Positions 21,630 to 64,000 of a stretch of DNA of 64,000 bases are shown in pieces. The translations under genes and the position numbers were made by a program. Source of the stretch: Marsupella aquatica (taxonomy: Eukaryota; Plantae; Marchantiophyta); the NCBI GenBank assembly GCA_973895155.1, contig OZ316899.1, forward strand, positions 4,467,241 through 4,531,240. The letters run 5' to 3'. Below the pieces are notes generated by a model. That model was not told the origin of the DNA and did no database searches. It worked only from the letters and a program-made list of their open reading frames with translations. Every line of letters starts with the position of its first letter. Position 1 is the stretch's first letter.

Positions 21630-24600
21630 ACCAACAGGATGGACACAGGGTTGTTAGATAATTTTTTGAGCTTATTAAGAATTATAGTTATTATTTAGGG
21701 ACATAGATCTCATGCGCCAACAAACTCACTTCCTTCTATATCTTTGGGAGTATGAGGGCTCCCTATATAGTACATAGCGTGGTGGTTATGTAACCACCTC
21801 TTGTGTCTATTCACTAGGGTAAGTCTAGTCTACCAGGGTTAGGTTTATCACTTGTAACACTCCCCCTTGGTTGGGTGTTAAGTGTTTTACAGTCAACCAC
21901 AGGATAGGGAAGCTAACCCTATGGCGTTAATTCTATGATCTGGCCCAATGTAGTATGGTCTCATTAAAACCATGCTTCCATCATGGAAAGAGTGCCACTA
22001 CTATAACAAAAGTTTGGGTCCAGTTATTAAAGGTAAATCCTTATAGTATCTAAAAGGGTGCATGAAAAAAATGCTAAGGTGTAATATGTATGTAGATGTC
22101 CGTGAATATGTCTAAGTACTCATGGTATGTGTTTATGCTTAAAGAGCTGTCTACACGCCTACCCTAATCCTCCGGGCCACGGGTCAAACGCCTCCAGTCG
22201 TTGGTCTGTTGCTTTGGTGGGCTGCTAACATCGGTTGAATCTTTGTTTGTTCGGTGGTCGATGCGGCCGAGTCGGGAGGTCGTCGTTTGTGTGTTGGGAG
22301 TGAGCATATGCATGTCGTCGGTTCTGCGTGATTCTCCATAGTTCAGGGTGGCGGGTCGGGGTAGCATATGATGTTGGAGCTCCCATCGTGTCAACTGATC
22401 GGCAGCAATGGGCGTGCAGTGTGGGTAAGCTCCTTAGGAGCGCTCGTCATTCTTTTCCTTGTAAAAGTAATGCCATACTTTGCAGTCCTATTCCATAAGC
22501 ATGTTCGCGGTGTAGGGATGGTGGGAGTGGTTTAGTGAACAAGTCCGCGCAATTGTCTTTACTTGGAATCCATTGTACTTGGACCTGTTCGCCATGCTGT
22601 TTGTGAGTGAAAAAGAATTTGGGTGCTATGTGTTTGATTCTATCCCCTTTGATGAATCCCTGAACGATCTGCTCCACACAGGGTCGGTTGTCATTGTATA
22701 TAGTTGTTGGTTTCTTTAGTTGAGCTCTGCCTGTGTGCAGGTGTATGTGATTTATCAGGTTTCTCAGCCAGATACATTCCCTGGTGGCTTTGTAAAGTGC
22801 TATTATCTTGGCATGATTTGAGGAGGTCACTGTAGTGACTGTTTGCTGCTTTTCCAAGAGATCGTCGTGCCACCTTGTAAGAAGACGTATCCCGTTTGGG
22901 ATTTTCATCGTCTGGGTCTGAGAGGTAGCTCACGTCTGCATAGCCGGTCAGTATGTTTTTTGAGTTCTTGGGGAAGAATAGCCCCATGTCCGTTGTGCCA
23001 TGCAGGTATTGGAATACCCTTTTTACTCAGTTCCAATGTCGGATCGTGGGGTTGGAGCTATGGCGAGCAAGGAGGTTGACGGCAAAAGCGATGTCAGGGT
23101 GCGACTGGGTTTCCAGGTACATCAGGGCCACGATGGCTGAGAGGTATGGCTTCTCGGGGCCAAGAATCTCCTCGGTCTCTGCTCATTTTTTAAAGGTGTC
23201 CCTTGTGGGGTCTGAGGATCTCAAGTCCATTGGAGTGCTGATCGGGTGGGCGGATGCCATGTTGAATTTCCGCAGTGCCTTCTCAGTATATGTTGATTGG
23301 TTGATGAGGATTCCCTGATGTAGGTAGTTAAATTGTAAGCCCAGACAATAGTTGGGCTTTTCCGATGTCCCTTGTCTCGAATGTCTTCTTTAGGATTTCG
23401 ATCATCTTGTGCATTATCATTGTTGTGCCAAAGATGTTAATGTCATCTACATAAATTGCAATGATAACAAATTCCTCTGCCTCCTATTTGAGAAACAAAC
23501 AAGGGGCAATATCGTTAGTATTGAAGTTCAATGCAAGCATTTTGGCTTTGAACCGTTTGTACCAGGTTCGTCCACTCTGTTTTAATCCGTACTTTGAACG
23601 AAGGACTTGGACTGCAAGTTCTCTTTTAACTTGTTTTGTCTGTGTAGCAGGCATGTTTGGTGGGAGAAATGTTCGTTTCCTTAGGTCGGATGTGGGAAGC
23701 ACATCCAGTGGCGTTGGTTCTGCAGGTCCAAGCTCGCTCGTCATTTTATCCAAATCGCTTGTAGGGCCAGTTTGGGGTAGACCCGGTTGTAGACGCGGTC
23801 TACGGTACCAATTTTCTCCCCCTCAATGTGGAACCTTATTCTTTTGATCAGTTCCGGGGGTGCCTTCATGTATATTGTGGTATCTAGGATACCATACAGA
23901 TAGGCTATGATCACATCTAGTGTGTGCATGACGAGCTTATGCAAGAGTGTAAACGCAATGAGGTACCGGTATGTTATGGAATCCATCATCGAGGAGTATG
24001 TTTGGTCGAAGCCCCGGCCGGGGATTTGGGTGTAGCCCTTCGCTACCAAACGAGCTTTGTATCTGATTACCTCTCCTTTTGCATTTCGTTTCCTCACAAA
24101 AGTGAACTTATAGCCTGTAAGGTGAGTCCCTGTAGGTGCAGGGATTACGGGTCCGAAAACTTTTTGTTTTATAAGGGAGTCTAATTCAGAGTTTATTGCT
24201 AGCTCCCATTGGTGCCAGTCTGGTTGAGATTGAGCCTCTGCTACTATGATGGGGTCAGGGGTGTCATTAGTTATCTCCTCAAAGATATGGAATGCAAAGT
24301 GATCATCGATTTGTGTTTTATCTCGCTGCATCATGTGTCCGGTGTGTATGTAGCTGATTGTTATTTCCTCATTTGATGTATCCCCTGGAAGGGGTGATCC
24401 TTGTGTAGGTATGGCCGTGGTTGTTGGTGATGCGCTGCGTGGTGCTCGCGGGTACGTATCCTTAGAGCCCAGGGGTCGGCCCTGTTTTGCCTTTGGTGCA
24501 GTTGCAGTTGCCTGTGCGGCTGTCCGAGAGATTCTTGCGGGTATGTTCGCTGCCTCCGTGTGTGACTGTGTGACCGCAGCTGCATCGTTGAAAGAGTCTG

Positions 24601-26099
24601 GTAATTTTGTGAGCATCAGTTGTAAATGGAGAACCCTTTGCACTCCTTGGTCTGCTTCTCTGGTCCGGTGGTCATCAGTAAATGGTTTCGTGGGCAGCCA
24701 TTGTAGTTCTTGTGCTTTGACATGTCCGCTTCTAGCAAGGTCTTCGGTGAATGTTGGGAACAAATTCGTCTTCAAAAATTGACAGTCTTGGAACCTTGCT
24801 TTAAAGATGTCTGCTGTCATGGGTTCCAAGTACCTGATGATAGAACGTGAGGCTAGTCCCACGTAGATACCTCGTTGTTGCTGAGGTCCCATTTTGGTCC
24901 GTTTGGGGCCTAGTATTGGGACCAGGACCAGGCATCCAAATGTTCGGAGATGGGTAATGTCTGGTGGTAGTCCATATGCCAAGAAGTGGGGGGGTCTGGG
25001 TATTGAAGGAGGATGGCCTTATTCTTAGAAGGGCGGCCGCATGCAGGACCGCATGGCCCCAGGCTGAGGCTGGTAAGTTGGATTGCATTAATAGGGGCCT
25101 GACCACCATTTGTATGCGTTTTATTACTGATTCGGCAATACCATTCTGAGAGTGGACGTGTGGGACCGGGTATTTGGTATCTATCCCTGCAGTCTCACAG
25201 AAGTCGTCAAACGTCTTTGAGGTAAACTCCCCCGCATTATCAACTCTTATGGTTTTGATTGGGTTCTTTGGGAATTGGTGTTTAAGTTTTAGTATGTGGG
25301 ATAAGATTCTGGTGAAGACTAAGTTTTGTGTGGAGAGCAAGGAGACCTGTGACCATTTGGTGGAGGCGTCTATAATGACCATGAAGTATCGGAATCGGCC
25401 GGAGGGTGGTTCGATTGGTCCGCAGACATCTGCTTGTATCCTCTCTAAAAATTGTGGAATCTTTTGTATGGTTTTTGATGGTGTAGGCCGAGTCACCATC
25501 TTTCCCTATGAACAAGCGATGCAGGGTCTGCTCGAGGCTGAGGGGTGGACTCCGTGAGGTATGCCCACCGTGGTCTTCACAATATTGTGGTACATATTGG
25601 TGCCGGGGTGGCCCAGGCGATTATGCCAGATTTGAGTTAAGGTGAGAGTGGGTCGCTCAGTATGGTAAGAGTCAATCTGGGTGATGTATAAACCAGGGGG
25701 TAAATTGGTAAAATCTCTCGGACTCCTCCCCCTGGTTTAGTGTTGTCTAGTATTTACAGGACTTCTTGGTTGTTGTGGGTGTCTGTATGGATGTGTAGCT
25801 TATTTGCGCAGATGTCGTTGAAGCTGATTAGGTTCCTTGTGGCCCTTGGTGCGTAAATTGCTGAGTCGATGTAGATTGTAGTCCCTTTTGGGAATCTGAC
25901 TCTGGCCGGGCCATAGCCCTCCTCTATATGGTTAGGTCCTGTTATGGTTGTCATGGATCTGTTGGATGGAGTGATTCGGAGAAAATAATGTTTGTCTCAT
26001 AATATTGAGTGAGATATTCCGCTGCCCACAATGCAGTTGCTTTGGTCATTCGGAAGTGATGAGGTAGAGCCTAGTTGGGCGGTGTGGACCTCAGGTACT

Positions 26100-26344
26100 C
26101 TCGGGGGGGTCACTTCCATGGAAGTGGCATATCATGTGCGACGAAGTATAGGGCCATTTAAATGGTTTTGGCGGAAGACTTATTAAGTCTTCTATGGAAA
26201 TATAGGGTTGTTTAATTGCAAAATGCATACATGTCATCACATGATTGGTGCCATACAACTTTCTAGAAAGTGACTTAGGGGGGTCATAAATGACCCAAAC
26301 CGTCGCACGTGATGTATGACCCTTCATATAGTGACCCCCCCGAG
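26100..26344. mobile_element. MITE 1 (245 bp), perfect 15-bp TIR CTCGGGGGGGTCACT, 8-bp TSD
   Basis: TIRs 26100-26114 and 26330-26344. Flanks CAGGTACT/CGGGTACT. Inner inverted pair ATCATGTGCGACG/CGTCGCACGTGAT. Confidence 0.85.
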
Positions 26345-26460
26345 CGGGTACTGCTGGGTCTATTCTGTCATCTAGGGCCTCCATGTAGTTGCCCAGTGCT
26401 CCGTTGGTGGGTTGTTCCCGACTCTACTTATAAAGTGTGACCAGGTGTGCAGGTGCCCAA

Positions 26461-26746
26461 CTCGGGGGGTTGACTATCAAAAATCGTAGGAACCACGTGC
26501 GATCCAAAATAGGTATTTTTCATAGAATTAGCTAAATTTTTAAAAAGTGTAGGAAACAAAAGAAGATATTATAGACCCATATTTATAGAATATTCTCTAA
26601 TATATACCTTTTATAAAGTAATATAGGTCATTAATATTGAAAATAGAGAATGCTTTTGGAATATTCTCATTATAAAATAGGTGTGTTTATATTAGGCTAG
26701 GATCGCACATGGTACCCCAAAATATACACTAAGTTAACCCCCCGAG
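26461..26746. mobile_element. MITE 2 (286 bp, AT-rich), TIR CTCGGGGGGTT(G/A)ACT, 8-bp TSD
   Basis: TIRs 26461-26475 and 26732-26746. Flanks GTGCCCAA/GTGCCCGA. Removing it restores Gag (GHLQRDCRAPAHLVTLYK). Confidence 0.85.
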
Positions 26747-29618
26747 GTGCCCGACAATCTCTTTGTAAGTGTCCCTTTGTTCCGCACCTAAAGCATTTGG
26801 TGGGGTTGTTATTCTCTCGGTTCCAATTATAATGTCCCCTGGTGTGGCGTCCCCCACGGCCTCATCCTCTGAATCCGCCTCCTCTTCCTCTGTATCCGCC
26901 TCCTTTGTTAAAATTTCCAAATGTTTGGCCTTCTCTATCGGGTTGGCCGTTGCCTGTGCCAACTTGTTGATTTCTGCCCCTACTAGGGGTTCTGCCTCTT
27001 CTCCCCCTGAAGTTGCCATTGCCTCTCCCTCTGGGTTTGTCGTTCTGGCGGTTAAAGTTGGCTTCTGGTCTTGGCGGGGGTGCAGCGGCCCCTAGTGGGC
27101 GAGATTTGGCATTCTCCAGGAGGAGTAATTGGTGCTTTTTGGCAAGAAGGATATATGCAATCAGTTCAGAATATTTAGTGAAGTCCATGTTTCTGTACTG
27201 TGATGCCAGGAGTAGGTTTCCTGCGTTGAATGTTGAAAGGGTGCGCTCGATCATTTCATCATCGCTGATGGGGTGGCCGCAGACTGCCAGTTGTGAGGTG
27301 ATCCGAAAGAGTTCCCCATTGTAGCTTGCGATTGAGGTGTGGTCTTGGACCCTCAGGTTGATCCAGTCATGGCGGGCTACTGGCAGGGAGACGAGCCGCA
27401 TGTGGTCAAACCATAATTTCAGATCTTCCCAGAGTATTCTAGGATTATATTGGTTGAGATACTGGGTCTTGAGTGGCTCGGCCAAGTGATGTCGTATGAA
27501 AATTAGCGCTTTGGCCTTCTGTTGTAGTGTGAGGCCTGCATCAATTAGGATTGTGTCCTGCAAATCTTTGGATGCAAGATAAGCCTCAATGTCAAGTGAC
27601 CATGTTAAGTAATTTGCACCGTCTATGGCTAGTGCCTTGAATTGCAATTTTTCAATCGCAGTCATGTTTGTATTAGTGTATGTGCTGCCGGAGCAGCTTT
27701 AGCTGTAGTGTGATTAGACCGGGGAGTTCCTTCGGTAATCGGAAGTATCTCAATAAATGGAAATCATTTAAGTTTTCCTCGGTGTATCTTGTTTGAAATT
27801 GTGCAATCTTGGAAGGTAAGATGGGAATTTCTCTGATATTAGTCCGTGTACGACCATTCTTGATGGTCCGTTTGCCTTGTATCAACCTTCCTCGTGCCTG
27901 CTCCGATATTTTGCTCAGATGGTTGCTTTACGGGCCGTCCTCTCCAGATGTTGAGTAATTTGGTGGAGAGGTTCGCATTTTTCTTAGGTATCGAGTTCTG
28001 TTTGGGGAGGAGAGATCAATGTAAGGGCAAAGCTTGTATGGGAGAGAGGAAAGAAGAAGGTCTAATGATGGATGGCCGCGGCGTGAAGAGCTATGGAATC
28101 CCCAAAAAAGAAACTGAACTTTTTAGGCATATGCGTCTTCCTTGAACTAATGTGAAGGTTTTCCATCTGTCAAACGAAATTTGCTCGAGCTAATATGGAG
28201 AAAAAAAAAATGCTCAGATCAAGAGTCATGCTGATAACGTATTCAGGGACATAGATCTCATGCGCCAACAAACTCACTTCCTTCTATATCTTTGGGAGTA
28301 TGAGGGCTCCCTATATAGTACATAGCGTGGTGGTTATGTAACCACCTCTTGTGTCTATTCACTAGGGTAAGTCTAGTCTACCAGGGTTAGGTTTTTCACT
28401 TGTAACAGTTATCTCTTTGTGTGTAATTTTAGTGTAGTGCAAGGCTTTAGGCCCGAGTCAACTTTAAACCTAGAAGATTGAGTGAAAAATTAATAGGGAT
28501 AAATTTAAGGTAGAGTAACAATTGCCCTTTGGCGATACTTTAATCAAATCTTTGTAGGTCATGAAAAACTTTGATTTTTTGGTGAGTAGATAGATTTTTA
28601 GATAGAGAATCATCTCCTAAAAATTTCATGCAAAATGGACATGTTAACACTTGGCTCTTTGACACTTAGAATAATTTGTTGTTTTAATTGACTATTTTAT
28701 ACTATATGGAAATATTTTGGTATTTTATTAGTATACTTATATTAGTCCAAAAAGTTTGAGTTTTTGTCGGGTGATAGATTATAGATAGAGGAATGCATTG
28801 ACAAATTTTCAACAAAATGGTGAAATTGCTAGGCCGCTAAGCCATTTAGCCATTTCGTCCACTAGTACATTTTTGCAATTTTTCCGATGCTCCGGTCACG
28901 GCCTAAAAGAGGCGTCCCATGCCCTTTCTATCCGATATTTTAAGAAACGGTTTGTCCGATATAATACGCTTCGGAAACTACCATTCCAATTTTAATAACA
29001 TCAGACCACGTTACCCATACAAACTACATTGGAAATTACCGATGACGATCAAGTCGGACTTAGGTTCAAAATGTTCTATGGAGGTGTCCGATACCCATTA
29101 AATGGCATCCTAGATCCGATACAAAACATATCGGAAATATTCCGATGGTAATAAAATGGCATCACCCTTCCGAAGGTGGTCCAATGGCTAAGGTATGGCA
29201 GTGCGTATCCGACACAAGAAAGATGGGAAATAGGTCTGATGTGGTTAGTATGGCAAATGTGATCCGATGCGGTGAATATCGGATAGACCGGGTTTGGGGT
29301 TTTTTGAATGTTTTAGGTGAAGGTTTGATGGTTTCGGTTATTTGAAACATGGGAAAGGGTATGGGAAAGATGGGAAATTTTCAGTATGCATGCATGGAGG
29401 ATTTCCATCTGATCAAAGGACTTGAGTGAACAATATATCATTCATTCAAGAAATTCATATTTGAAGCTTGCATGCATGTTAATCTTTTGAGGTACATATA
29501 TGTGTGGAGTAATTGAATGTTATAATAGGTAGAACCAGATATATATATATATGATTCATTAATGCCGATAGAAGGAAAACGTACATAGAGGGCTTTTACC
29601 TACCTAGGGCTGCATGTA

Positions 29619-32600
29619 CTATAGAGAGGGGTCCAAATCCTCCACTATGACTACATTTGGTTGATCCTGAACGGTGGATCGCGAGCGAGGGATGTAAGGC
29701 ATGACAATGGACCACTCTGGGTCATCCCGATAGAGAAGATAAAATGCTTGCTCCAAATGATGGGGAAATGCAAATGGATCTGACGTTCTCCAACTGGCAC
29801 TAACAACACTACATGCACTTGCCTTCAACCATGTGAAACCATAAGCATCCTCTTCACAAGTCCGGTTGTGGCTGACTAGATTCATTTGAAACCACTTGCA
29901 CTTCAACACCACCTCCTCCAAGGTTGTATGTTGTTGATACTTGATGGTAAGAATCTCCTCAATTTTCCCATAGTGTGCCACAGTACTACGTACGGGATTT
30001 CTATCAGATGTGCTACTCTGTGAATCTTGGATGAACCACCCCATCACCCCACAATCTTGTGTTGCTGCCCTCTTCATATCAAGATGTTCAACTCGGAAAT
30101 GCCTCCCCTTTGACCACATGGCTGTTCGAGTTGTGACTGTAAGTAATGGACCATGAACCAAGGTGCGCATGTCACCGGTGGCCTCTAGGAAGTGCAAAAC
30201 ACTCTCACCCCGACCCAACAAGGCATCAATCTCTGCCAACTTCTCCTTCATATATGGGAGAAACTTTGGGAAGAGGCGTGGCCATTGACTATTCTGCTTC
30301 TCCTCCTCATAATAGGTACTCCACTCCCCTGCAATCTCTGGAGAGTTATACAACATGAATGTGGTGAGCTGGAGGCACTCAGCAGACCCTAGTAGTTGTT
30401 CTCCCTTTGCTCCTGTGAGTCTATCATCCTCATAGTCTGCCTCTCGTGCTGCTTCATCTGTCCATCCCCTTGGAGCATTTGGATCAAGTGTAGCCACAAT
30501 ATTTGTACAATAGAACATACTTTCTGCTCCAAGGTGACGCTCAGCAATGCTACCTTCCACCCTAGCACGGTTTGACACATACCCCTTCATGACTCCCATG
30601 TACCGCTCTATCCAATACATCCAACGACAATGTACAGGGCCTGCAATTGCCACTTCACGCACTAGATGTATGAGAAAATGAACTTGACCATCAAAGAAGG
30701 AAGGAGGGAGTGCTCGCTCCAACTTGCACACTACCTCCACTCCAAACACCTCCATGGCAGCAATCTCATCCTCATTCACCTCCTTTTGACACACCCATCT
30801 CAACAACCTACCCAATGACCAAAGGGCATCCCGAAGATCCTTGCTGCCCAATCCAATAATAGCAACTGGAATAACATGCTGCAAAAGGCGATGGTAATCA
30901 TGGGTCTTCAAGAAAGCTGGCCACTTTGGAGAGTCATCTCCACCAAATGTCTTGCAAAGATTGGCACCATACCCTGTAGGAAACCGCATTGACCCTATAC
31001 GTTTGCAAATCTGTCCGCTCATTGCTCGTCAAAACCCATGGGGGATGGATAGTAAGGGGATGATCAGGATCATCCATAGATGGCCAAAAACCATGAAGTC
31101 CATGCATCCCCATCTCCTCACAACTCTCTCTCTCCAGTTGCTGTTTTTCTCCCCATATAGATGTTGGATCAATGACCTCCCAACATTTCCCTCAATATGC
31201 ATAGGGTCCAATAGATGGTTAATGGGCATGTGGCCCCAATATGGAAGTTGTGATAGTGCTGACAAACGGGTCATTCCGCATCTAGCCAAGGGTATTGGGT
31301 CATCTGGGTCAGTGACCCTCTCCCATACCTCCTTCCAATATGCTGGGTCTTTTCGTTGAGGGTGAGGACGTGTATCTGGTTGAACCAACTCTGTGTCATA
31401 CAAAAATGGATCATACCTCCATTCATGCTCTTCTGGAAGATACTTTGTGTGACCAATGTAAACAATCTTCCGTAGGGTGGTAGACTTTGGGCGCGCCACT
31501 CCCTCCAAATCGGGACCACAAGTCGGGCAAGCTCGGTATCCAGAAGTTTGCAAGCCAGAAACACATCCAACCCTTGAACAAGAATGGTAACAAAACACCA
31601 CAAATGTTTCAAAGTAAGTTCATTTTCAGAAGCAACGTACCTAAGGGACAAATCCTATTTAAAATTGAGCATACATTTACAGATAGACCATGCAATGCAA
31701 AGCCATATGTACGTAATTTAATTTAAAGGAAGTGCCACAAATCCATATTCATACCTGGAAGATCATGCATGGTCCACATAAGAATGGCCTTCAACTTAAA
31801 ATGACGGGGTAAGCCCCCCGTATGCACTCGGCCATCATAGCAATCCACTCCTCTCCATAGCTCTTTTAGCTCCTCAATCAATGGTTGCAAGTATACATCA
31901 ATCTTCTTCACTTGCTTAGGACCAGGGATAATCATGGATATGATCAAATGACCCTTCTTCATGGCCATCCATGGTGGGATGTTGTAGTTAGTGAGGACTA
32001 CTGGCCATATTGAGTATGGTTGGGCCTTGCCAGCCATTGCAAAAGGGCTTATACCATCTGACGCCAAACCAAGGCGAACGTGACGAGGATCAGTCTTGAA
32101 ATCACCCCAACAATCCTCCACAAATTTTTTTGCAGGGGAGTCAACCATCATGCACATGGTAGGTGGATCCAAACTCATGTTTGAACGATGTTGGGAATGC
32201 CATACCATATACTTAGCCAACTCTGCACATCAAAACTGGTGACACAAACGAGGAATAAGGGGAAAGTACCTCATAACCTTTTGAGGTACTTTTCCAGTCA
32301 ACATATCCTCACGATATCTTGGGGCGTTGCAGGTGGGACATGTCACTGCATCCTTGTGCTCTTTAACAAAACACAATCATTCACACAAGCATGTATGACT
32401 TCGTACTTGAGTCCTATGGACTTCAACACTTTCTTTGCCTCTTTCCACGATGCTGGCAAGTTGTTCCCTTCTGGCAATATACACTCATGCAATGTCCTGA
32501 AAATATCATCAAGGAGCAAGTTGCTTGCTCTGTGTCTTTGCTGCAAGTTCAGTAATAACATGATTGCCGAAAGTCGAGATAATCTGGACCCCTCAAATAT

Positions 32601-34590
32601 GCGAGTTCGTGCATGCTCCCGAGCCTCCTCCCACTGTTGGGAATGTGATTCCCGTGGAGGAATGTGACCAGAATGAGGAGGTAAGTCAATGTCCTCCCAA
32701 TCACCCATGTCATGATCACCTTCCCCTACATCCATGAACTGGTGCATCAATTCATCCATAGCCTGCTCCTCATGCACTCTTTCTTGGGAAGCATTAGGTA
32801 CTTCATGTGGAATGTTTGCATTCGTTTTTTTCAAAAAAGTCAAGGGATCCTAAAGTCTTTTATATTTTTGAATCTCATTTTTTAAAGAGTTTGAATCTCT
32901 CATAGCTTTTGCAGTAATGAAAGAAATTATCCCTTCAAAAATCAATAAAAGATTTTGAAGAAGCGGATGTTTTGGATCATAAAATTTTTTATTGATATAT
33001 TTTCAAATTTATGGAAAGAAATTCCAAAGCGTTGTTTTCATCGTAACCTTGACCCCCTTCCTGACCATGCATGGCCTCACGGAGATGTTGTTGCATAGCT
33101 TGTGATAGTACCTCAACATCTGGTTGAGCAAATGTATTCTATACATAGAACAACAATATTGATATTAGGCCATGGTGGTTAATTAACTTAGTCAATTATT
33201 ACAGATCCATGTCTTTCTGACCAATAACACATGAAAGTCTGACTATGTCAAATTTTATATATATACAAAATTGGATGTACATGTATGCATATATGTGCTA
33301 TGAAGGATGACAGCGTATGGCCATCTTAGGCGCATCCCAATCATAGTCACAAAATATCTCCTCACCAGCCCTAATAGTCCGTATGGCTACAGTCATAATA
33401 TGGTCATCCATATGCTTGACATAGTAAGGTGGTGGTGGTGCCCCCAAAATTTGAAGCCACTCTACATTTGGTTCAAGTCCTCTCCCTCTCCCTTTGGTAC
33501 TATTGATGTACCCAGCGATGTTATCACATCGCACAGGATCACCATCAATCATTCTACAATGCCAAGGCCTCTTGAGGACCTCATCCGGATCAGAATCCAT
33601 CTGCAATGCATACACCCCCCATGCTGGTTGTTGCCGCAAAATAATGTTCCAGTTTTTGGCAGTGTATACGGCACCAATATAAGGAAACAAGTGCTCCCCA
33701 TCATAACCTCTCCGCCACGGCTTCGGATGGACCACAATGTCCTCCATAGCAAATAACCCAAGTCCTACATCAACACCAAGGGAGGATGGCTTGACTATCC
33801 ATTCACGCCCCCATATCTCTACAGGGGCATCGGTGGGTATGCCAGGAGTGATTCTAAATATCTCAGATGAGAAATCTTTCAAGACAATCATTGCCTTTCC
33901 TGTGAGATATGACAACCCAACCTACCCTCCACTACCACGTAATCCTCACCCCGCTCTACCAAAGCAGCATGGACCAAATTTGGGCCTAGGGACTTGCGAG
34001 TGGCCAAAGGTTCATAATGTCTCCGATGTCTATGGGAGCGAGGTTGGGTGCGTAGAACCCTAGTACATGGAGGTGCCTCTGGCTCACCCATCTCTGTGTC
34101 CTCCACTGGTCCCGGTATAGTTTGGGCCTCAACATGGGGAGGACTATGAGGAAGGGGTGTAGAAGTTGATGCAAGTAGCCCTCTTGCATGACCCAAAAAT
34201 GTCTCTAGCCACAGGTCATTAGAGACCAATGGACGGCGGGGCCTATGGGGCACCTATTCATTCACAAATAAACCCAAAATTAATACATGTATGATGACGC
34301 GCAATAAGGGGCAACTTGTGTTTCCTCCACAAATTAGTCCGGTTAAAAGGTAGGGAGCATACCTCATGAGTTGAATGTCCTGGTAAATCACCCTGGTGCC
34401 GTCCATGATTCTCAATATGCTCAATGGTCTCCCAAGCTTGGCGAACAACCATTCCCTTACATCTTACACACCAACATGGAATGGGGCCAAGAGGAGGACG
34501 CCAAGACCTAGCAGGGGGAGGAGCAATATCCCCCTCAGAAGATGACGAGTTTGAGTCGGAATCTGAGTCTGAACTCCCAGAAGTTGACAT
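29619..34590 (-). pseudogene. tnpD: CACTA TnpD/Tnp2 transposase, spliced. Predicted exons 34590-34363, 33138-33048, 32782-31755, ~31570-29619
   Basis: Transposase-associated Zn motif PIPCWCVRC...HIENHG; HACVNDC...CPTC; PRHVRLGLASDGISPF; WPVVLTNYNIPPW; MHDLP; DPMHIEGNV; LKTHDYH; GPVHCRWMYWIERYM; C-terminal VLKCKWF...DPFAFPHH. GT/AG junctions are phase-compatible except the last acceptor, which is unresolved. Frameshift at ~32363 and a stop at ~32235. Confidence 0.88.
33298..34253 (-). CDS. SET-domain (lysine methyltransferase fold) exon inside the CACTA element; probably spliced to exon 34590-34363; 1-nt frameshift at ~33917 in this copy
   Basis: ORF 33298..33915 contains KPSSLGVDVGLGLFAMEDI, LFPYIG, YAL, IDG...NIAGYINS, PNVEW and VAIRTIRAGEEIFCDY, i.e. 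the conserved SET motifs in the correct order. No pre-SET or post-SET Cys cluster. Confidence 0.82.
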
Positions 34591-35595
34591 CTGCCCATCA
34601 TAGGTACACACCTCATCTCAAAATCTCCCTCATATTAAGTCTCACACAATTGAATTGGAATATATGCAAGCTTATAAGAGGTAAATAAAACATACACACC
34701 CACACACACTATACATCTTACCTGAATGATATCCGTGCTCAACAATGCCTAATAGGATCTTGGCCTTAGGATATATCCTAAGACAATATCCAAAATGTCT
34801 GCAAAAGGTGGTACCATGATAAACTTAGCTAGGGATGTATTCCCACAAATGTGCCCAACAATGACCAAAAGGTTGGAGCCACAAATTCTACAAGTGTCCA
34901 CCCTCGTATCAATTTAGGGAGTGCATCATACCTTTTGGATGCACGGGCTATCACAATGCATATGGCATTGCAAAATTGGACCCTAAAAAAACAAAGACAA
35001 ATTCAACAACCCAACCCTCTCCAAACAAGTACTGCACAATACACACACAAGGTTAATACCCTATGTTTGGCCTCCCACAAAATATTGCACATCACATATA
35101 ACAAAAGACCATCACATATTGGCAGGAAGTACAATATAATGGCAAGAACATACCAGCCTATATATATATATTACCCCAAAATTTGTCCATTTGGATAAAT
35201 TGCCGCACTACAATGTAACCATCCGATCAAAAACCACGTTGGCGAAACAAAACTGGGACCACCCAAAGCAAACCTACATTTCATTGCAAGTAAATGATGA
35301 AGTTAATATCCTTACAAAAACACTAATCCCAATTACCAACCCTATTCCCAACTACTATCCCATTACAAATTCATCGGAAACGTAGTCGGATGCCAAGCGG
35401 CAGTGAATGTCCGATGCTGGGACGAGGGGTCCGATTCTTATCGGATTGGACATTTGCGATGTTTCTAGTATCGGACATACAATCGGATAGTCAATTAGGT
35501 CGCCCGACTGAAGTGCGAGTGCACCTCAATCGGGCATTGTTTCGAAAGAGTGTCGGGCGGACTTGGCAAGCTCAATTGCGTGAGCTCTGGAGGTC

Positions 35596-38495
35596 ATGGC
35601 TATGGAGGGCAATGGTGGGGCACCGGGGGGGATGGAGCTGGTCCATCTAAAAGCTTTGCTCTCATAATGGCAGAGGTTTTCAGGACGCAAGCTGGGTTGT
35701 CTGCTGAATCTGCAGAGAAAGTTGCCCATTTGACTCAAGGGTTGATTGACTCCTCCGACAGAGCTGTGATCAGGCTAGAGAAGGAGAGGAAAAGAAAGAG
35801 GAAGGAGGAGAGTAGGAGGCCAGAGGAGACTCTCTCACCACGACAGAGAGAAGAGCCTCAGGAAGGAGGCTTGAGCTGCAAAGAGGCTTTGAATTGAGGA
35901 GGAGAGACTGCGTGCAGAGGAGAGGGCAAAACGGCCAAAGCTGGTTTTGAATGAGGGAGGAGCTCCCACAGCAAAGAGCTATAGACTCTTCAAGAGTCAG
36001 CTGGGGCAGGTCTTAAGGTCACATTTTGGCCCCTTAGACTACTGGGGAAAGAAGAAAGAAGAGGAGTGATTTCGGGTTAAGGAGCAAGTGAAAGAGAGAT
36101 TCAGCAATGGCTCGTTCTTAGATGACCGATTTCTGAACAGGAAAATCTCTGTATCACTTGCAGATCGTCGAAATCACATTAGGGAGAAGATGAGGAAGTA
36201 CCTGCTTGAATGTCAGGATGAGGAAGAGGTGATCAGGAAGGGAAATCCCCCGGATGACATAGACGCTGATGCCTGGTCCGCTTGGATTGAGGCTGAGCTG
36301 CAGGTTCGTGCTTGGCAAGCTCGTTGTCACTGGCAAGCTAAGGTTTCTGAGGCAGAGAAGAGGGCCCTTGCAAGAGAGACTGCTGACATCCGCCCTCTGC
36401 AATGCAAAGCAATTGAATGGGAGAGGATATCAAAACAGCTTGGAGACCCACCCCTGGCAATTCAGAAGGCAATTGATAGAGTGGAGAAGAGACCAAAAGT
36501 GACTCACCGGATGGGACAAGGTGGATCCCTTCGTCTCAAAGCAGAGTTTGTGAGTTCTTTGCCCCCCTCCTCTTTGCTCAATTCCTACCTCCTTGCAAGG
36601 TCCTTCCTCCTCCTGATCACCTTAGGCACCAATCCTGAGTAATGCCTGCAGAGCCCCCCCCCCCCCCGCAACTACCATTCTTATGCTAATGTAAACAGTG
36701 TGGTTGTCTAGCTTATTAATTGTCGTGGATTTTCAGTTTCCAGTGTTTTCTGCTGAGTCCGATGCATGTCCGACTTTAATTTAGTCGGAAGCAACATCGG
36801 ATGCTGTATTATGGTCAGTTGCAGGGCTGTGTTCGATCTAGGTCTGATTACTTTACCATCGGACATTGTATCGGACTCAAAGTGTCGGGTTTGCTTCCGA
36901 TGTGGCAAAGAGGGGTCCGATGAAATTAGGATCGGATAAATTCAAATTTTTGAATTATCGATGAGTGTTATTGGGTGAGCGGCCATGATTCATGCCAAGT
37001 GCTTAATTAGGTTATAGGTAGGGATTTTCTGAAAGTGAAGGGGGATGATTTTTAAAACTAAAATCAAGGGTTGATGAAGGGTTTAATTTTTGGAAGTAAT
37101 GTATATATTTAGCTTGAAGGAGTATTAATTTGTTGGAGTGCAGGAGCAAGAGCATGGACGCCCAATCTTGCCAATCGAGAGAGAGTTAGCTAAGAAGCTT
37201 GGACCACGGGCTCTCAAGCTTTGCATGGAGGAGGAGTTGGGGTTGGTAAGTTTATTCAATACCGTTAATCCTAAGGTGATCAATTCATCATTGAGTTGTT
37301 GTAATTAAAATTTTGGTAACACTAACATATTGGTTGGTGCTTGCGTATATATATGGATGTAGGGCTCGGAGGATGGGTCAGAGACTTCTGGCGAGGAGGA
37401 GGAGGACGGATCGGACAACTCAGATTCAGAATCTGAGGGCGTGGCACCCATCCCTGTGCCTCCAATTGGTGCAACATCCCGAGGGCGTGGAGGTAGTCAG
37501 TCTAGACAGAGGACACATGATGGTGGTAGGGGTCATAGTGTTGGGGGAGGTAGTAGGGGTGCTCGCGTAGGAGGCGCATCTCGCCATACAGTGGCTGGTG
37601 GGGCTGGTGGTTCTCACCGGTCTGCTCTTGGTAGGGGGGGTGGTAGTAGGGCACCCGATGGTTTGCACTGGTTGACTTCTGGTAGGGGGGTGGTAGTAGG
37701 GCACCCGATGGTTTGCACCGGTCCACTTCTGGTGGAGGGACTGGTAGTAGGGCACCTGGTGGTTCTCACCGGTCCGCTTCTGGTGGGGGGCAGGGCGGGG
37801 GTGGCACCGGGGCCCCTAGTGGTTCTCATCGGGCAGGTTCTGGTGGGGGGGAGGGACCAGGGCTCCTGGTGGTTCTCATCGGGCAGGTTCTAGTGCGGGG
37901 GGTGGTAGTGGGGCACCTGGTGGTTATCACCGGTCCATTTCTGGTGGGGGGGGGGTGGCACCAGGGCTCCTAGTGGTTCTCGCCATTCAGGTGCTGCAGG
38001 TGGCGGGAGTAGTGGGGCACATGCTGCTTCTCGTCATTCAGGGGCTGGTGGTGGGGAGGGTAGTGGGACCCCTGCTGGTTCTCACCAGTCAGTTGGGGAT
38101 GGGGGCAGTGCCCCAGCTGACCAGTTAGGGGCCAACCAGGGTACTACAAGCGTTGGAGGCAGTGGCGGTGGTGCGAGTGGGTCTCACCAGTCGGGTGCCA
38201 TCGGGGGTGATGGCTCTCACCACTCTGGCACCCAAGTGGGCAGTGGGGATGCATCCTTTCATACTTGCTCTGCTGGTGGGGGTGCTGCACCGCCTTCGCA
38301 TGACTCAGGAGGTGTGTCTGGTGGTGATGCTCGTGGAAGTAGTGGTACAGCAGGCCCTAGCACCACAGGTGCAGGTGGGTCACATGCCCCCATTGATGAG
38401 GCCCTAGAGGTAGTGCCAGCTGCTAGTACCCCACCATCAAGATCTTGCACCCATTCCAAGAAAAGGAAGGGACGACATGCACCAGCATATGGATA
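35596..38495 (+). pseudogene. tnpA: CACTA TnpA/Ptta-like gene (exons ~35596-36549, 37144-37244, ~37363-38495) with an acidic/Gly-Ser repeat tail
   Basis: PPDDIDADAWSAW and KVTHRMGQGGSLRLKAEF resemble the plant transposase Ptta/En/Spm family. Donor GTGAGT at 36550, acceptor TGCAG at 37143, donor GTAAGT at 37245. The upstream frame has TGA stops and poly-G slips. Confidence 0.65.
37600..38110 (+). repeat. ~51-bp (17-codon) coding minisatellite, GGGSRAPGGSHRSAS-like units
   Basis: Units start at ~37630, 37681, 37731 and onward. G-run length changes cause frameshifts. Confidence 0.8.
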
Positions 38496-39339
38496 GGGCA
38501 GCCTAGGATAGGCCCATATATAGGTAGGCATTTTGCTGATTGACTTAGAGTACACTTGTGCATTTAGTACTTACCATGTTCATTTGGCAAGGCCAGGCCA
38601 TTGATCCTGTTTTGTATATCTATTTTGGGGTCTCCCCTTTTTGATTATATATTTATACCTTCTTTGCGTACACACAGATGTTGGGGTCTATGTGTGTCAC
38701 CATCTTAATACCCTAATTCAGCCCCCAAATTAAATCCAATAAAAACCCCAAATTTATGAGCCATACTCTACTGCTTCCGATCTGCTTCCGATACTAGATT
38801 TGATGCTCAGTCCGATACACATTCCGTTGCTACCATCTTTGCAATGTCCAATGCCACATCCTATGCACTTTCCAAATTGGAAAATAATGCAACATCCGAT
38901 ACTTATAATTATGCAATTTCCAATTTCTAAATAAACGGATAAACCGATATTATAAGAATTGGACCATGATCGCATGTGTACAATGCCTTGCATGCGGTAG
39001 CTGCCTTGTTTCCGAAACTCTTCGCATCGGGCGTGATTTTATCCAATACCCTCTACGTCGGTCTATGCGATTACTACTACATCGGAAAGTCCGAAGGAGA
39101 TCCGATTGAAAGAATATATAGAAGAGGAAAGAATATATAGGCAGAGGGTAATCAAAAGAGTAAAGAAAATATAGAGAATTACTTTGTCGATGATCAACTT
39201 GATTGAGTCATGAAATTAGATAGGAATGAAGACTCAACCTACCATTGATTGGTGAGATATGATGGTTGGGAAAATCATTGATTACAAGGAGCGTGATTGA
39301 AAAGCCAGGTTGAATTAAAGGTGACAATGTCAACATCAC

Positions 39340-41884: not shown

Positions 41885-44800
41885 TATTGTAACCCATAGG
41901 TTAGGTCAACATCCAATCCTAGTTAGGGGATTAAGGTAGTTACTACAACTACCACTACATGTATACCTAGGGAGGTATTAGTAAACCCCATAGGAATGGA
42001 TGAACCTTAGTTGTTGGTGGACTTAACATTTTCTCTTCTGAATTATCTACACCTCTCAACACGTTATCAGCACGTAGCTCTCCACAAGCAACTTTCTTTG
42101 AGAAAAAGGCCACATTTACGTTAAATGTTCATAGATTTTACACATTTATTTCTCGATGGGAGGAGAATACGTTGAGAAATAGATTTCTCATTCTTTTGCT
42201 ATGTTGCCCATTCTACTGCCCATTCTTCTGCCCATTGTTGCAAGGCTATGGACAATCGGGAAATTTTATTCAAGGAAATACAAACGAGGGCCAGCCAAAG
42301 AATGAATTTTGGAACTCAAATTTGGCTCAATGAGGAGTTAGGAAATAAGGAATAATTGATTGGGTGTGCCCTCAGGTGTGTCCAAAGAGAGAATACGAGG
42401 ATAAAGAACGTTGTTAATTGACAATTCTTCCCCCCCAACCAAATCCTTTGATGCCCTTCGCTCGACTATGACAGACGCATAGAGCAACACTATGCAAACT
42501 GGAACTATTAGTCAAATCTTCAAGGTGACATTGATATTGACGATATGTGGACCACACAGTTCAAATTAATCCCTTGGGAGACCCTGAACAGACCCGCACA
42601 ACGCAAAGTATCGAATGGATAACAGTTATAACAGATTCAGTGGTTCACAAAATTAATACGCTCTCCAAGCTACCTTTGAGATTTGAAACTCACTGTCAAA
42701 CATCACGGCGATTGAAGCACTTACAACCTGAGATTGAAGCATAAGGGCTTGAGTGCGATAGTAACAACAAAGGTATTGGGGGGGGGGGAATTAGGGAGTT
42801 CTTTTATTGTAAGTTGATCGAGAAGGGCTGCAGCACATGTGACTCGCTATTGCCTCCCAGAAGCAAAATATACTTTGGTCAGTAGAGAGAGACACGGCCC
42901 CGCGGACTTGATGCTGCCATTGCTCATCCCAAGTTTTTTGCCGAGGAAATGATATCAATCCAAACCTCATTCAATTTGCAAAGTTGAAGGGTCCCAGTGG
43001 ATGAAACACTAGACGATAGCCTTTTGCCCTGCCCAAGCTTGCTCAAGAACCAATTTATTAGCCATCAACGGGACATCAAATTAGAGGAGAATTTGCTTCT
43101 TTTCCCCTATGGACCCTCAATAGGTGCCCCAACTGGTTACCATGATTTCAAAGTACGAGACATAAGGACTGAAGGAGGAAACTGGCACAAAAGATAGAGT
43201 GAACACAAGAAACAACATCAAATTGGATAAGGTGTAGTGATGTGATAAGGACCAGTTTCTCCAAAAGCAAAAAGTGACCGACCAATAGAGAGAAGATTTC
43301 AAATCAAAGACAAAAATGCACATTAAATACAAAGGCAGCATTTGACGTAGTGAACAAGAGAGGAACAAGCAGTTATGTGACAAAAGCGCAACATTTGCCC
43401 CAATTCTGCACAAGAAAATCACAAAGGAAAGTCATTTCCCATCACTGCAACACATAACAACAAAATTTGCCACTACAAAAAGAAAATTGCAATTGCATAA
43501 TTAAGCCCTTAATTGGGTCATCAAAATGAATTAATGGGTGGTAATTAATTACTAATCAAATGGGAAAACAAAAATCTACCCCACTATCCTATAAATCAAA
43601 ATGTAACATTTCATAAATTTGAGATTGGAAACTTTATTTCACACTTCAATGAGTTTAAATAGAAAAGGGGTAAACAAAAATGGCCTGAAATGAACAAGAG
43701 CATTTTAATTTTTTCCTCAATGATGAGAAACAAATGAATGCTAAGACACAATTAGTTGGTTTCCACGTATACCATACATCAAGAAGTAAAATGTGGACCA
43801 ATACACAATTGAAGTATAAGTTGCTTGAATGGTATAACTTACATACTTATTAAAAAAGAGCAAATGTGTGGAACAAAATATGAAAGATGTATAAGAGGGA
43901 ACAAACATGACATGGAACAATCATCCATTTGCCTGGCTGACATAAGCTATTACAATGAAAACTCCCTACACCTCAATTTGAGGGGGACAAAATAATGATT
44001 GCCCCAATCATATAGCCCTTAAGGCATTCAAATATGAACTAGCAATACTAATTACTAATACAAGGTATAGATAGAGGTTCACCCCCTATATCTAGTAGGG
44101 ATAGTTGTTAAGCTTACCATGGAGGATATAGGGGCCAACCTCATATAAAATCTCTATATATAAGGTATTTAGACATGACTTAAAATTTGGAATTCCAAGA
44201 AGGTGAAGAACGCGCATACAAATGAGAATTTGAGATTTGAGGGGGAGAGAAGTACACCCTCATACTCATATGCATCCATTGGATTATTTGAGCTTCATTT
44301 TGCAAATGATATCAATTGAGGAAGTCTCTTTAGCACATGCTATGAAATGAAGTGCACAAGTGCTCTGAGCACATGAAATACTGATGATGGCCAATCATGA
44401 AAAGTACTTCGTAAAAACAAATAAGATAAGTGGAGAGAAATTATCCTTGAGATTTGAAAAGCCTTTGATGGAAGTGTGTGAAAATCCCTAACACCACCAT
44501 GGCTTTGCCACTACTACCTATGAACATGACATGTATATATGTTGGCCAACGATTTATATCACATGGGAAATTTTCCACATATATGGATCCAAAGGGAAAC
44601 TGAAGGCAATGGAATACCACCAAAAATGATGGAAAAAACTAACGTATACAAGTTGGTTGCAGAAAATGCACATCTGATTATAAACACCATGAATGAAAAC
44701 TTGAGATCTAATGAAGAACACAAATGAAGACTCCCATGTGAAGGAAAAATGTGAGACCTTTCAGAGATAAAAACCCAAGATTCAAGTCTCTTCATGCTTC

Positions 44801-45269
44801 AAACCTCAAACTTCCCCCACATTAAGAGTTCATATGTGACTTACTCTCAATAGGGGAACAATATATCTAAGACCAAATTTTAGATCTATATTTCCACCCC
44901 CCTTGAAACATATCCAAAATGACTATAAATGTAACATTGGTGGTGGCACTCTTTCCCTTAGAAGAAAGCAAGAGGGTTTTAGTGAGACCACACCAATGGA
45001 TACCGTGTACTACATTGATCTATCATTTACAACTGGATGTTAACCTTAGTGTGGTTGCATTATTTATCTATGATAAAACAACCAAGGGGGAGTGTTGTAA
45101 CCCATAGGTTAGGTCAACATCCAATACTAGTTAGGGGATTAAGGTAGTTACTATAACTACCACTACATGTATACATAGGGAGGTATTAGTAAACCCCCTA
45201 GGAATGGATGAACCTTAGTTGTTGGTGGACTTAACATTTTCTCTTTTGAATTATCTACACCTCTCAACA
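41885..45269 (+). mobile_element. Non-autonomous Bianca-type LTR element (LARD-like, 3385 bp)
   Basis: 177-bp LTRs 41885-42061 and 45093-45269 (6 mismatches; the 5' copy starts TA instead of TG). TSD CAAAC. PBS CGTTATCAGCACG 42062-42074. PPT CAAGGGGGAG 45083-45092. No gag/pol motifs recognised in the 3-kb interior. Confidence 0.9.
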
Positions 45270-45472
45270 CAAACAATATATTGTTTCCAAGTTCAAAACA
45301 AATTGGTATTTCTCGAACCTGTGCCCCGAGGAATCCCCAAGCACCAATCTAAATTAGCAATTCCATTAAATGAATAGTCCTAGTATATAACAAAATTAAA
45401 CTCCTCACTTCCCCAACAGTCAGAATGGGCTATTTGACAAGGTCAACCCTCTCAAGATTGGGCAAACCTTGT

Positions 45473-62696: not shown

Positions 62697-62936
62697 CACT
62701 AGTACATTTTTGACGACTTTCCGATACTCAAAACGTGACTATTTTGTCATGTCCGAACCCGAGAGAATCGGACGTTGTCCGATACAAATACCATTGTAAT
62801 GTCCGATGTGCGCTGCATCGGATTTAGTTAGTCCAATGTGTTAATGCAACCAATATCCCACATCGGTTACATCGGAACGTTTCCGAAACAAAATGAATCG
62901 GACATTTGACCATAAAAGTATTGTCAAAGGTCAGAT
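62697..62936. mobile_element. Left end of a second CACTA element, interrupted by family B copy 3
   Basis: CACTAGTACATTTTTG is identical to the end at 28860 and is followed by clustered TCCGA/TCGGA motifs. Confidence 0.75.
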
Positions 62937-64000
62937 TGTGACGCCGATGACATGGTCCTTATTCTATAATCTGAGTAACTAGGTTGCTGTATGCAAGGAG
63001 TAGCTATTGATACCGCATAACAATTAGCAAGATGGCAAGAATAAGGGCAATCATGGCGTTAAGAGTAGGGAAATAAAAGCTATGTCGCGGGTGGTCGGCG
63101 ACCATATCTCTTTCAATATGTCACCAAATCCGGATCTGTAAAGAGCATTGGAAAGATCTGGTCAAGGCGAGTAAAATCGATACAAAACACTTGAGAAACG
63201 GAGGTGTATTAAGGAAGATACGGCCTGATTAGTGTGACAGGTTAACTTGTGGCCGAAATTAGCGGGTTCGGCTTCAGTTTCGGGTTAACCCAAGCTCGGC
63301 CACGGCTTAGCTTAGGTAAGCACGGCTTCAGCTTATCTCAGGTAAGCACGGCTTCAGCTTAGCTCAAGTAAGCACAGCTTCAGCTTAGGCTTAACCCGGG
63401 TTCGGGTTAGACTTAACTCGGGTTAGCCTAAACTCGGGCTCAGGTTAGCATAGGTAAGCTCGGGTTCGGGCTCAGCTTAGGCTAGGTTAGCGGATAGCGG
63501 ATTGCGGGTAGCGGCCTAACCCGAGACCATGGGTTAGATAGGATAGCTAGGTTAGCCGAACTCGGGTTAGCTATGTAACTCGGGTTAGCGCAGCAGTGAG
63601 TACCCCCTCTCGGTTGCGGGGGCATAACTCTCTGTGTATTTGACCAAATCGGCTATAATTGACCTCGTTGGAAAGAGGAGCTCAAGCCGCTTCCAACGCT
63701 GCTATCCACGCAGCAAATGGTTGAATAGAGAAATTGGGAGAGGAGGCGCAAGCTCGCAAAAACCATGGAGGAGGGCCCAAATCTGAAGTACATAGCCAAT
63801 TCGAGATAGAAATAAAGTTGCGAGTTAGGGTTCAGTAGTTAGAGATAGTGGCGGCTCTGTTAGGGCTGGGATGGGGCTCCAACAGCGTAGTATCCACCCA
63901 TTTGGGCTCAGTATGAGAGTATATAGAGCAGCCCCCCGGTAGAGGCAAGGGGGGGTGGACTTCAGTTGTGTGATCTCACGTAGACTAAGCAGCAGGGAGG
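62937..64000. mobile_element. Family B LTR, copy 3 (runs off the window)
   Basis: Starts TGTGACGCCGATGACATGG as in copy 1. Has a 328-bp deletion relative to copy 1 and retains the segment that copy 1 lacks. Confidence 0.88.

Follow-up and report, generated by a model that had tools for sequence, protein, structure and literature searches.

Does a plant transposon carry a SET-domain protein as a regular part of its own gene set, or did a single copy pick up a fragment of a host gene? This question is raised by a stretch of 64,000 nucleotides from the liverwort Marsupella aquatica (assembly GCA_973895155.1, contig OZ316899.1, positions 4,467,241 to 4,531,240 of the forward strand), referred to below as the window, in which a first-pass annotation made from the letters alone had noticed the motifs of a SET domain within a transposon of the CACTA type. 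The analysis described here points to a liverwort lineage of TnpD-type CACTA (En/Spm) elements in which an exon for a SET lysine methyltransferase probably lies inside the transcription unit of the transposase. On one strand, a zinc-binding exon 1 would be followed by exon 2, which contains, after a basic Pro-rich linker, the SET domain with its conserved stop, and then by the catalytic exons of TnpD. A divergent second gene and motif-rich subterminal regions would complete an element of ~10 kb.

The first line of evidence is the frame itself, an open reading frame (ORF) which an ORF scan places on the minus strand of the window and which is free of stops over 205 codons:

33298..33915, minus strand: SET-domain open frame, consisting of an N-flank and a SET core with GxG, YxG, INS...PN and EEIFCDY, and ending in a stop 14 codons past the catalytic-type Tyr (ORF, Pfam, family alignment, AlphaFold2 and Foldseek)

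All the motifs quoted in the first-pass annotation are found in this frame and in the order expected of a SET domain, namely GLGLFA (residues 51-56 of the 205), PYIG (78-81), IDGD..NIAGYINS (122-139), PNV (149-151) and AIRTIRAGEEIFCDY (177-191). The Pfam SET profile (PF00856) is matched over positions 13-104 of 105 with an E-value of 8.4e-8 and 33 bits, where the gathering cut-off is 22.4 bits. An AlphaFold2 model, built on an alignment of 39 family members, has a mean predicted local distance difference test score (pLDDT) of 90.6 and a predicted template modelling score (pTM) of 0.87. With this model, Foldseek finds ~200 solved SET domains at a probability of 1.0 and at target-normalised template modelling (TM) scores of 0.55-0.73, including LegAS4, SET8/KMT5A, MLL1/3/4, G9a/EHMT1, NSD1 and SUV39H2, with sequence identities of 16-23% throughout. 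Because of the Pfam score, the confidence of the AlphaFold2 model and the Foldseek matches, the identification goes far beyond chance, and the window frame is a real SET domain and not a chance frame.

In known SET enzymes, the GxG, YxG and PN motifs together with the C-terminal Tyr line the cofactor pocket and the lysine channel. Across the 39 aligned members, which share 23-72% identity, G53, G81, Y84 and N150 are invariant, and W35, G51, L76, P78, D124, G125, P127, N132, G135, S139, I181, G184, E186 and Y191 are at least 90% conserved; these positions include both glycines of GLGLF (G51, G53), G81 and Y84 of PYIGAVY, and Y191 of the C-terminal motif GEEIFCDY. The first-pass annotation had also pointed out that the terminal Tyr is kept and that NS takes the place of the usual NH, which is correct for the window frame and extends to the family as a whole, where the motif reads YINS, followed by a variable basic loop of 6-15 residues and by PN, with the Asn and the PN retained. 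Besides this NS-loop-PN variant, the family is characterized by an N-flank of ~45 residues (WGRxWIVK) and by a long insert between YxG and IDGD.

Neither a pre-SET nor a post-SET Cys cluster is present in the window frame, in which the residues after DY are DWDAPKMAIRCHPS. The comparison with a minimal SET domain such as PR-Set7, drawn in the first-pass annotation, agrees with the fold search, where SET8/KMT5A is among the top matches, but the best sequence-profile match is a different protein. This best solved relative is LegAS4 of Legionella (E 1.3e-4 with a profile of the 39 members), which aligns via GxG, YxG, N-x2-YIN(F)S, N-x-E-[FW]-V and the terminal NY/DY. LegAS4/RomA (PDB 5czy, 8swi, 8sr6) share with the liverwort family the YIN(F)S in place of NHS as well as the N-x-E-[FW]-V motif, and are the best solved match in Foldseek, too. 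LegAS4 is, however, a bacterial secreted effector with ankyrin repeats and without transposon context, and at ~18% identity homology beyond the SET fold is not established. Proteins of the SET8/KMT5A (PR-Set7) and vSET type resemble the liverwort family in being compact and free of Cys-rich pre-SET and post-SET modules, but are only 16-20% identical to it, and the liverwort family has an N-flank, a YxG-IDGD insert and an NS-loop-PN of its own. The language-model neighbours of the SET frame are small SET proteins of giant viruses, which serve as a lead only. Assignment to one of the host SET subfamilies was considered and rejected, as fold and profile searches give similarly low identities to KMT5A, MLL/SET1, SUV39/G9a, NSD and LegAS4.

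The second line of evidence is the recurrence of the same arrangement in other genomes. At E<=1e-3, an exhaustive HMMER scan of 1.84 billion protein cluster representatives returned 86 relatives, and those examined included no ordinary host SET family; judged from these 86 relatives only, the SET family is small and distinct and does not derive from a host SET gene by recent copying. Among database proteins, one of the liverwort Calypogeia fissa matches best, with 72% identity. The corresponding C. fissa locus (L001) and the window run collinearly over TnpD, SET, exon 1 and the divergent gene, here called ORF-A, with ~78% of nucleotides identical, and the whole L001 unit is enclosed by CACTACTACA (5555) and its near-perfect inverse (~15665), with clusters of the TCCGAT motif at matching places. 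The two ends read CACTACTACAT at 5555 and ATGTAGTAGT(C) at ~15665.

In all eight transposon contexts examined, zinc-finger exon, SET exon and TnpD follow each other in this order on one strand. These contexts are the window, C. fissa, two loci of Riccia sorocarpa and four sets of metagenome or SRA contigs (L004; L005; L006; L008-L010). SET is followed by Transposase_21/DUF4218 on the same strand at both Riccia loci (L003 as annotated, L002 by tblastn), and likewise on an ENA metagenome contig (L004), a JGI contig (L005), a further ENA contig (L006) and the SRA-derived L008-L010. Across the transposon contexts, the identity of SET to the window copy is ~40-72%, and the organism names cover at least two liverwort classes. 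Several distinct contigs per public run, at 90-99% identity, cover the SET exon, which points to multiple copies. In a phylogeny, the rows from transposon contexts are united in one group of 32 rows (SH-aLRT 89), which excludes two homologues in host context. These are the C. fissa proteins P0070 and P0083, distant homologues of 31-34% identity on long branches, whose genes lie among ordinary host genes without TnpD nearby and which may have been domesticated long ago or be related to the source gene. Their loci (L011 9001-10512 and L012 9001-12589) have mL59 and FtsH, and ClpP and PaO, as neighbours, and one of the two genes is intronless with a Cys-rich N-terminus.

Selection on the SET sequence provides the third line of evidence. 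The dN/dS ratio (Nei-Gojobori) is 0.16 between the window and C. fissa (dS 1.19), 0.17 between the window and L005, and 0.25 between C. fissa and L005; the estimates are confined to these three closest pairs, as dS is saturated in deeper ones, and lie well below the ~1 expected of a captured fragment. Because the synteny holds in 8 of 8 contexts, dN/dS is ~0.16 and catalytic-type motifs are invariant across 23-72% identity, SET can be regarded as a constant, selected component of a CACTA lineage and not as a single captured fragment. The core of the first-pass idea, a transposon-encoded SET protein, is thus borne out by synteny, selection and fold.

How the SET exon is embedded in the element can be seen from the following features, all on the minus strand and given in the direction of reading:

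34363-34590, minus strand: coding part of exon 1, 76 codons, with an acidic Ser-rich head, then CxCxxC-x13-H-x4-H (PCWCVRCKGMVVRQAWETIEHIENHGRH), and a phase-0 GT donor at its end
34254-34362, minus strand: intron 1, 109 nt, GT..AG, separating the zinc-finger and SET exons (sequence, and the same join in the C. fissa model)
33916..34253, minus strand: N-terminal 113 codons of exon 2, Pro-rich, with the conserved basic patch VLRTxPRSxRxRRHYE, out of frame with the SET part
29619..33138, minus strand: TnpD-type coding region (Transposase_21, DUF4218, DUF4216) with a phase-0 AG acceptor at 33140-33139 (Pfam, tblastn with the TnpD of L008, and the uninterrupted C. fissa ORF)

Exon 2, comprising the Pro-rich linker, the SET domain and the stop, spans 33298-34253, which is exactly the range that the first-pass annotation had given for the SET feature. 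This range stands as one exon, but the 205-codon frame is only its 3' part, two-thirds of the 319 codons, and a 1-bp deletion within a run of G separates it from the 113 codons that precede it. At this point (33915/33916), C. fissa has GGG ATG TCG and the window GGT-TG TCA. Most related contigs from public runs have a C put in behind 33915, namely in 43.6 of 43.6 (X1), 1234 of 1371 (X3) and 5287 of 5851 (X4) depth units. With the extra base, exon 2 reads GRLG-L-SYLTGKA in one frame, the family consensus being GRLGxSxLTGKA. The deletion is either a true mutation of the window copy or a homopolymer error of the assembly. An 'intron' of 26 nt which would rejoin the two frames was ruled out, as the homologues differ by a simple 1 bp in the G run. 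The basic patch is VLRTQPRSHRHRRHYE in the window and VLRTGPRSERRRRHYE in C. fissa.

The deposited C. fissa model P0001 joins exon 1 to the SET exon (…GYSAQQ|VPHRP…) just as proposed for the window, and the zinc-finger (ZnF) motif and SET occur together in one predicted protein in P0019, P0022, P0040, P0067 and P0094. The window and the examined homologues alike show the CxCxxC...H...H pattern, which in P0022 of Riccia is reduced to CxxC. In C. fissa L001, the Ser-rich head of exon 1 (9827-10153; MSTSSSSTSDSD…) lies in another frame than the zinc-finger part; this otherwise well-kept copy is thus also frameshifted in exon 1, and its deposited model starts at an internal Met.

Downstream of SET, Pfam confirms a CACTA transposase of the TnpD type. 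Transposase_21 is matched by the ORFs 31723-32220 (E 2e-40) and 31029-31601 (E 3e-8), and the ORF 29619-31022 contains DUF4218 (E 9e-30) and DUF4216 (E 2e-4); all the transposase domains are TnpD-type, and Pfam finds no PIF/Harbinger DDE plus Myb-like gene. The SET exon therefore does lie between two parts of the TnpD locus, as the first reading of the letters had it, with the zinc-finger exon upstream (34363-34590) and the catalytic domains downstream (29619-33138). Canonical plant TnpD starts with a small zinc-binding domain, the Transposase-associated domain (PF13963). No zinc domain is found in the TnpD frame downstream of SET in the window family copies examined, and PF13963 is the top match for the exon 1 segment of three homologues (E 0.003, 0.013 and 0.03-0.06; profile positions 29-63 of 74). 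Exon 1 is probably a reduced form of this domain.

The TnpD coding part of the window starts with NTFAQPDVEVLSQAMQQHLREA… at the acceptor 33140-33139. Similarity at the protein level begins exactly at the acceptor AG, with NTFAQPDVEVLSQAM… in the window, NQFVESDFGVLPRAM… in C. fissa and DEFGQPSIHALSRRQ… in L008, and in these three copies it starts at least 14 codons before any Met, while the acceptor AG is part of an in-frame TAG. Because the similarity precedes any Met and the AG lies within an in-frame stop codon, the first TnpD exon must be an internal coding exon. Phase 0 is shared by the exon-1 donor and by the acceptors of the SET exon (34253) and the TnpD exon (33138). Since the exon-1 donor is compatible with the SET exon as well as with the first TnpD exon, alternative splicing would be the likeliest design: exon 1 would be spliced either to the SET exon, yielding a ZnF-SET protein of ~400 aa, or past it to TnpD, yielding a ZnF-transposase. 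The SET exon would end in its stop and presumably in a poly(A) site. We rate the chances of this two-product scheme as somewhat better than even.

Several observations weigh against a SET exon that is spliced in this way and encodes a methyltransferase. The four public runs which hold the sequence cover the introns evenly and show no GT..AG joints, as genomic DNA would. The splicing is derived from the sequence and from the gene predictions of other groups, possibly ab initio, and some of these predictions (P0051, P0094) fuse SET to TnpD. The PF13963 matches of the homologues all remain below the Pfam cut-off of 27.7 bits, and exon 1 of the window gives no Pfam match. Furthermore, the window copy cannot make a full-length ZnF-SET protein or transposase. 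With regard to the enzyme, the canonical His of NH(S/C)xxPN is absent in every one of the 39 aligned members and a basic loop is inserted before PN, on account of which the catalytic activity could be altered or lost. The fold matches, at 16-23% identity to all, favour no SET subfamily. Histone H3 methyltransferase activity has been reported for LegAS4 and RomA, and for this reason the His-less variant need not mean inactivity. That the SET product is an active methyltransferase is suggested by the conserved motifs, with chances that we judge to be even or slightly better.

Other readings of the locus have to be measured against the same evidence. SET might be an independent accessory gene which owns exon 1, with TnpD translated separately from a downstream start, be it on an mRNA of its own or at an internal Met, and with nothing shared between the two. 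In favour of this, an ATG closely follows the acceptor in the TnpD frame of L008, the TnpD exon of the window and of L001 reaches a Met after 14 codons, and a conserved stop ends all SET proteins. However, in three divergent copies TnpD is conserved as coding sequence from the AG acceptor onward, before the first Met is reached, and TnpD would be left without its usual N-terminal zinc domain, for which exon 1 is the sole candidate; two separate genes are therefore unlikely, though they retain some weight. The opposite arrangement, one ZnF-SET-TnpD polypeptide as the counterpart of SETMAR on a transposon, would need a donor upstream of the SET stop. It is depicted by the fused predictions P0051 (Riccia, 773 aa) and P0094 (625 aa), and SET and TnpD do share a strand and are separated by a short spacer of 160-230 nt. 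Yet nearly all members have a stop 3-15 codons after DY, with conservation extending over the full SET C-terminus, the window and C. fissa show no conservation in the spacer from the SET stop to the TnpD acceptor, and P0094 would halve SET at LFPY and destroy the fold, all of which makes a fusion improbable.

The function of the domain can also be read differently, with SET kept as a non-catalytic module that binds peptides or chromatin or regulates the transposase. An NH motif that has lost its His throughout the family, together with the basic loop inserted before PN, would agree with this, as would the presence of Arabidopsis SUVR1 and SUVR2 ('probable inactive') among the fold matches. Against it, GxG, YxG, PN and the terminal Tyr show little or no variation, and LegAS4, the closest solved relative, has a His-less YIN(F)S as well, so we consider a purely non-catalytic role rather unlikely. 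A one-off capture of a host SET fragment, or a chance frame in the window copy alone, could be entertained since the window copy is degenerate and P0070 and P0083, among host genes, make an ancient host source conceivable. It fails on the same arrangement in eight transposon contexts from at least two liverwort classes, on the dN/dS of 0.16 together with the significant Pfam and fold searches, and on the position of the host-context homologues, only 31-34% identical, outside the transposon group; it is ruled out by the synteny and selection results, and we grant it next to no probability. We retain the SET exon as a probable regular part of the transposase transcription unit.

The window copy itself is a dead member of this family, with a frameshifted SET exon, a TnpD gene interrupted three times and a right end that is lost or mutated. 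A frameshift near 32380 leaves …IHACVNDCVL/LKST… where C. fissa has …IHACVNDCILFRGEH…, and a nonsense codon at 32221-32223 changes HQFRCAEL, as in C. fissa, to HQF*CAEL. The third interruption resembles a miniature inverted-repeat transposable element (MITE):

32821..33044, no strand: MITE-like AT-rich insertion of 224 bp in the first TnpD exon, with an inverted repeat inside; the joint 32820->33045 is seen in the runs X1, X3 and X4

Related copies have 7 nt (CCCTCAA) in its place, which restores the frame. Contigs from public runs that consist of the 32821-33044 piece alone have a several-fold higher depth than the flanks, as for a high-copy MITE.

The remaining parts of the element are its ends, an internal motif cluster and the divergent gene:

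28860..29300, no strand: left CACTA end, with terminal CACTAGTACATTTTTGCAATTTTTCCGATG and then ~440 bp of TCCGAT/ATCGGA motifs, equal to the far end of C. fissa L001 (~15250-15665)
38760..39110, no strand: right subterminal repeat region with TCCGAT/ATCGGA motifs; no terminal inverted repeat was found directly past it, where one is expected
35200..35500, no strand: internal TCCGAT/ATCGGA cluster between the divergent genes, a putative shared promoter or regulatory region, with a counterpart in C. fissa L001 at ~8751-9000
35550..38412, plus strand: ORF-A, the divergent second gene, with several exons and a repetitive C-terminal part, matching a 532-aa C. fissa gene at the same position

The left end begins with CACTAGTACA at 28860, and the motif clusters at 28860-29300 and 38760-39110 enclose the SET exon, in agreement with its original placement inside the subterminal repeats of the element. 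A right terminal repeat was found neither by a pattern search allowing up to 3 mismatches, nor by an inverted-repeat search, nor by a scan for TAGTG; the right end is lost or mutated, and the element does not reach further. With respect to a 3-bp target site duplication, the right end in the window is not found, and at L001 the far end has an altered last base and the flanks are not matchable with confidence. Within the 64 kb, TCCGAT/ATCGGA clusters are limited to both subterminal regions, the clusters internal to the element and a further CACTA end at 62697. A second internal cluster lies in an intron of ORF-A (36740-36940), with a counterpart at ~7001-7250 of C. fissa L001. The internal clusters suggest that the factor which binds the ends may also regulate the element's own promoter. 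The further CACTA end is a second left end (62697-63000; CACTAGTACATTTTTGAC…) with the same TCCGAT subterminal motifs, and this element extends past the window.

ORF-A has no Pfam domain and was found by tblastx in C. fissa only, not in Riccia or L004; we assume a TnpA-like accessory role. Its 3' part (37604-38090) consists of imperfect tandem repeats of ~70% identity at offsets of ~150-260 bp, and the C. fissa counterpart is similarly repetitive. Outside the element, a Copia LTR retrotransposon (21692-28407; gag, integrase and reverse transcriptase on the minus strand; 168-bp long terminal repeats (LTRs), 98.8% identical) adjoins the left flank. Just past the truncated right end, two 176-bp direct repeats (41887-42062 and 45095-45270), with 97% identity and a distance of 3.2 kb, are possible LTRs of a small LTR element. 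Two copies of another repeat, of ~84% identity, lie at 5452-7294 and 12815-17474.

Transposons and SET domains, as well as transposons with two products from one unit, have been met before, and the liverwort element can be compared with several of these systems. In maize En/Spm, alternative splicing of one transcript yields both TnpA and TnpD. The liverwort element would likewise yield two proteins from a common 5' exon of one CACTA unit, but the second product is the DNA-binding TnpA in maize and a SET protein here, with the divergent ORF-A at the place expected of a TnpA-like gene. In primate SETMAR (SET plus Hsmar1), SET and transposase domains also share one transcription unit; SETMAR is, however, a single domesticated host gene, formed where a transposon landed beside a host SET, whereas the liverwort element is mobile, multi-copy and provided with terminal repeats of its own. 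The VANC proteins of VANDAL Mutator elements offer a functional and speculative analogy as transposon-encoded factors proposed to act on the element's own chromatin, but are not SET-class enzymes and are unrelated in sequence.

SET genes on DNA transposons are on record for HarbingerS and for MuDR families of oomycetes (Kojima & Jurka 2014, cited in PMC12730594), as well as for Helitron captures. As described there, HarbingerS and the oomycete MuDR families are autonomous lineages with a SET gene as a constant accessory (PMC12730594), in which they resemble the liverwort element. They differ in having a PIF/Harbinger or Mutator transposase instead of a TnpD-type CACTA transposase, and in that SET is a separate accessory gene, whereas in the liverwort element it lies between the first and the catalytic exons of the transposase gene. 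Within the EnSpm/CACTA superfamily, red-algal Plavaka elements carry the SET-containing accessory gene PAG2 (bioRxiv 10.1101/2025.02.11.637652; PMC12730594) and have likewise retained SET over long evolutionary time (bioRxiv 10.1101/2025.02.11.637652). PAG2 differs, however, in combining SET with an N6-adenine DNA methylase (PF01555), within a three-gene cassette that includes a ParB-like 2OG-oxygenase (bioRxiv 10.1101/2025.02.11.637652). The liverwort protein consists of ZnF and SET only, and its transposase is of the land-plant Transposase_21/DUF4218/DUF4216 type. PF01555 is absent from exon 1, exon 2 and full-length homologues of 320-500 aa, and Pfam gives SET alone in exon 2.

A search of the full-text literature, with Repbase outside its scope, found no description of a SET gene in a CACTA element of liverworts or other land plants. 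The first-pass statement that no CACTA-SET system is described is thus right for land-plant TnpD-type CACTA elements and wrong for the EnSpm superfamily at large, as the SET gene of Plavaka had already been reported (bioRxiv 10.1101/2025.02.11.637652). A transposon-borne SET is not new in general, and the liverwort form appears to be undescribed. The liverwort case differs from these systems in its land-plant TnpD transposase, in the ZnF plus SET make-up of the protein and in the position of SET inside the transposase gene.

With respect to the mode of action, the ZnF-SET protein would follow the transposase to the same sites or partners by means of the shared N-terminal domain and the basic patch, which resembles a nuclear localization signal. 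There it would methylate a lysine of the element's nucleosomes, of TnpD or of ORF-A, and the outcome might be a tuning of silencing or of transposition, in the form of anti-silencing, target choice or self-restraint. The complete scenario, in which a self-targeted ZnF-SET product of alternative splicing marks the element's own chromatin or transposition proteins and has been retained from a time before leafy and complex thalloid liverworts diverged, is put forward tentatively and with more doubt than confidence.

The finding also affects the annotation of liverwort genomes. In Riccia and Calypogeia, SET exons of this kind are annotated as host 'SET domain-containing proteins', and the counts of chromatin modifiers are inflated as a result. 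Plants silence their transposons largely by histone lysine methylation, and bryophyte transposons are marked by H3K9 and H3K27 methylation. A lysine methyltransferase of its own, carried across deep divergences of the liverworts under purifying selection, suggests that the element manipulates or exploits this silencing layer, and two isoforms with a common targeting domain, if they do exist, would represent a compact route by which a mobile element brings an enzyme to its own DNA.

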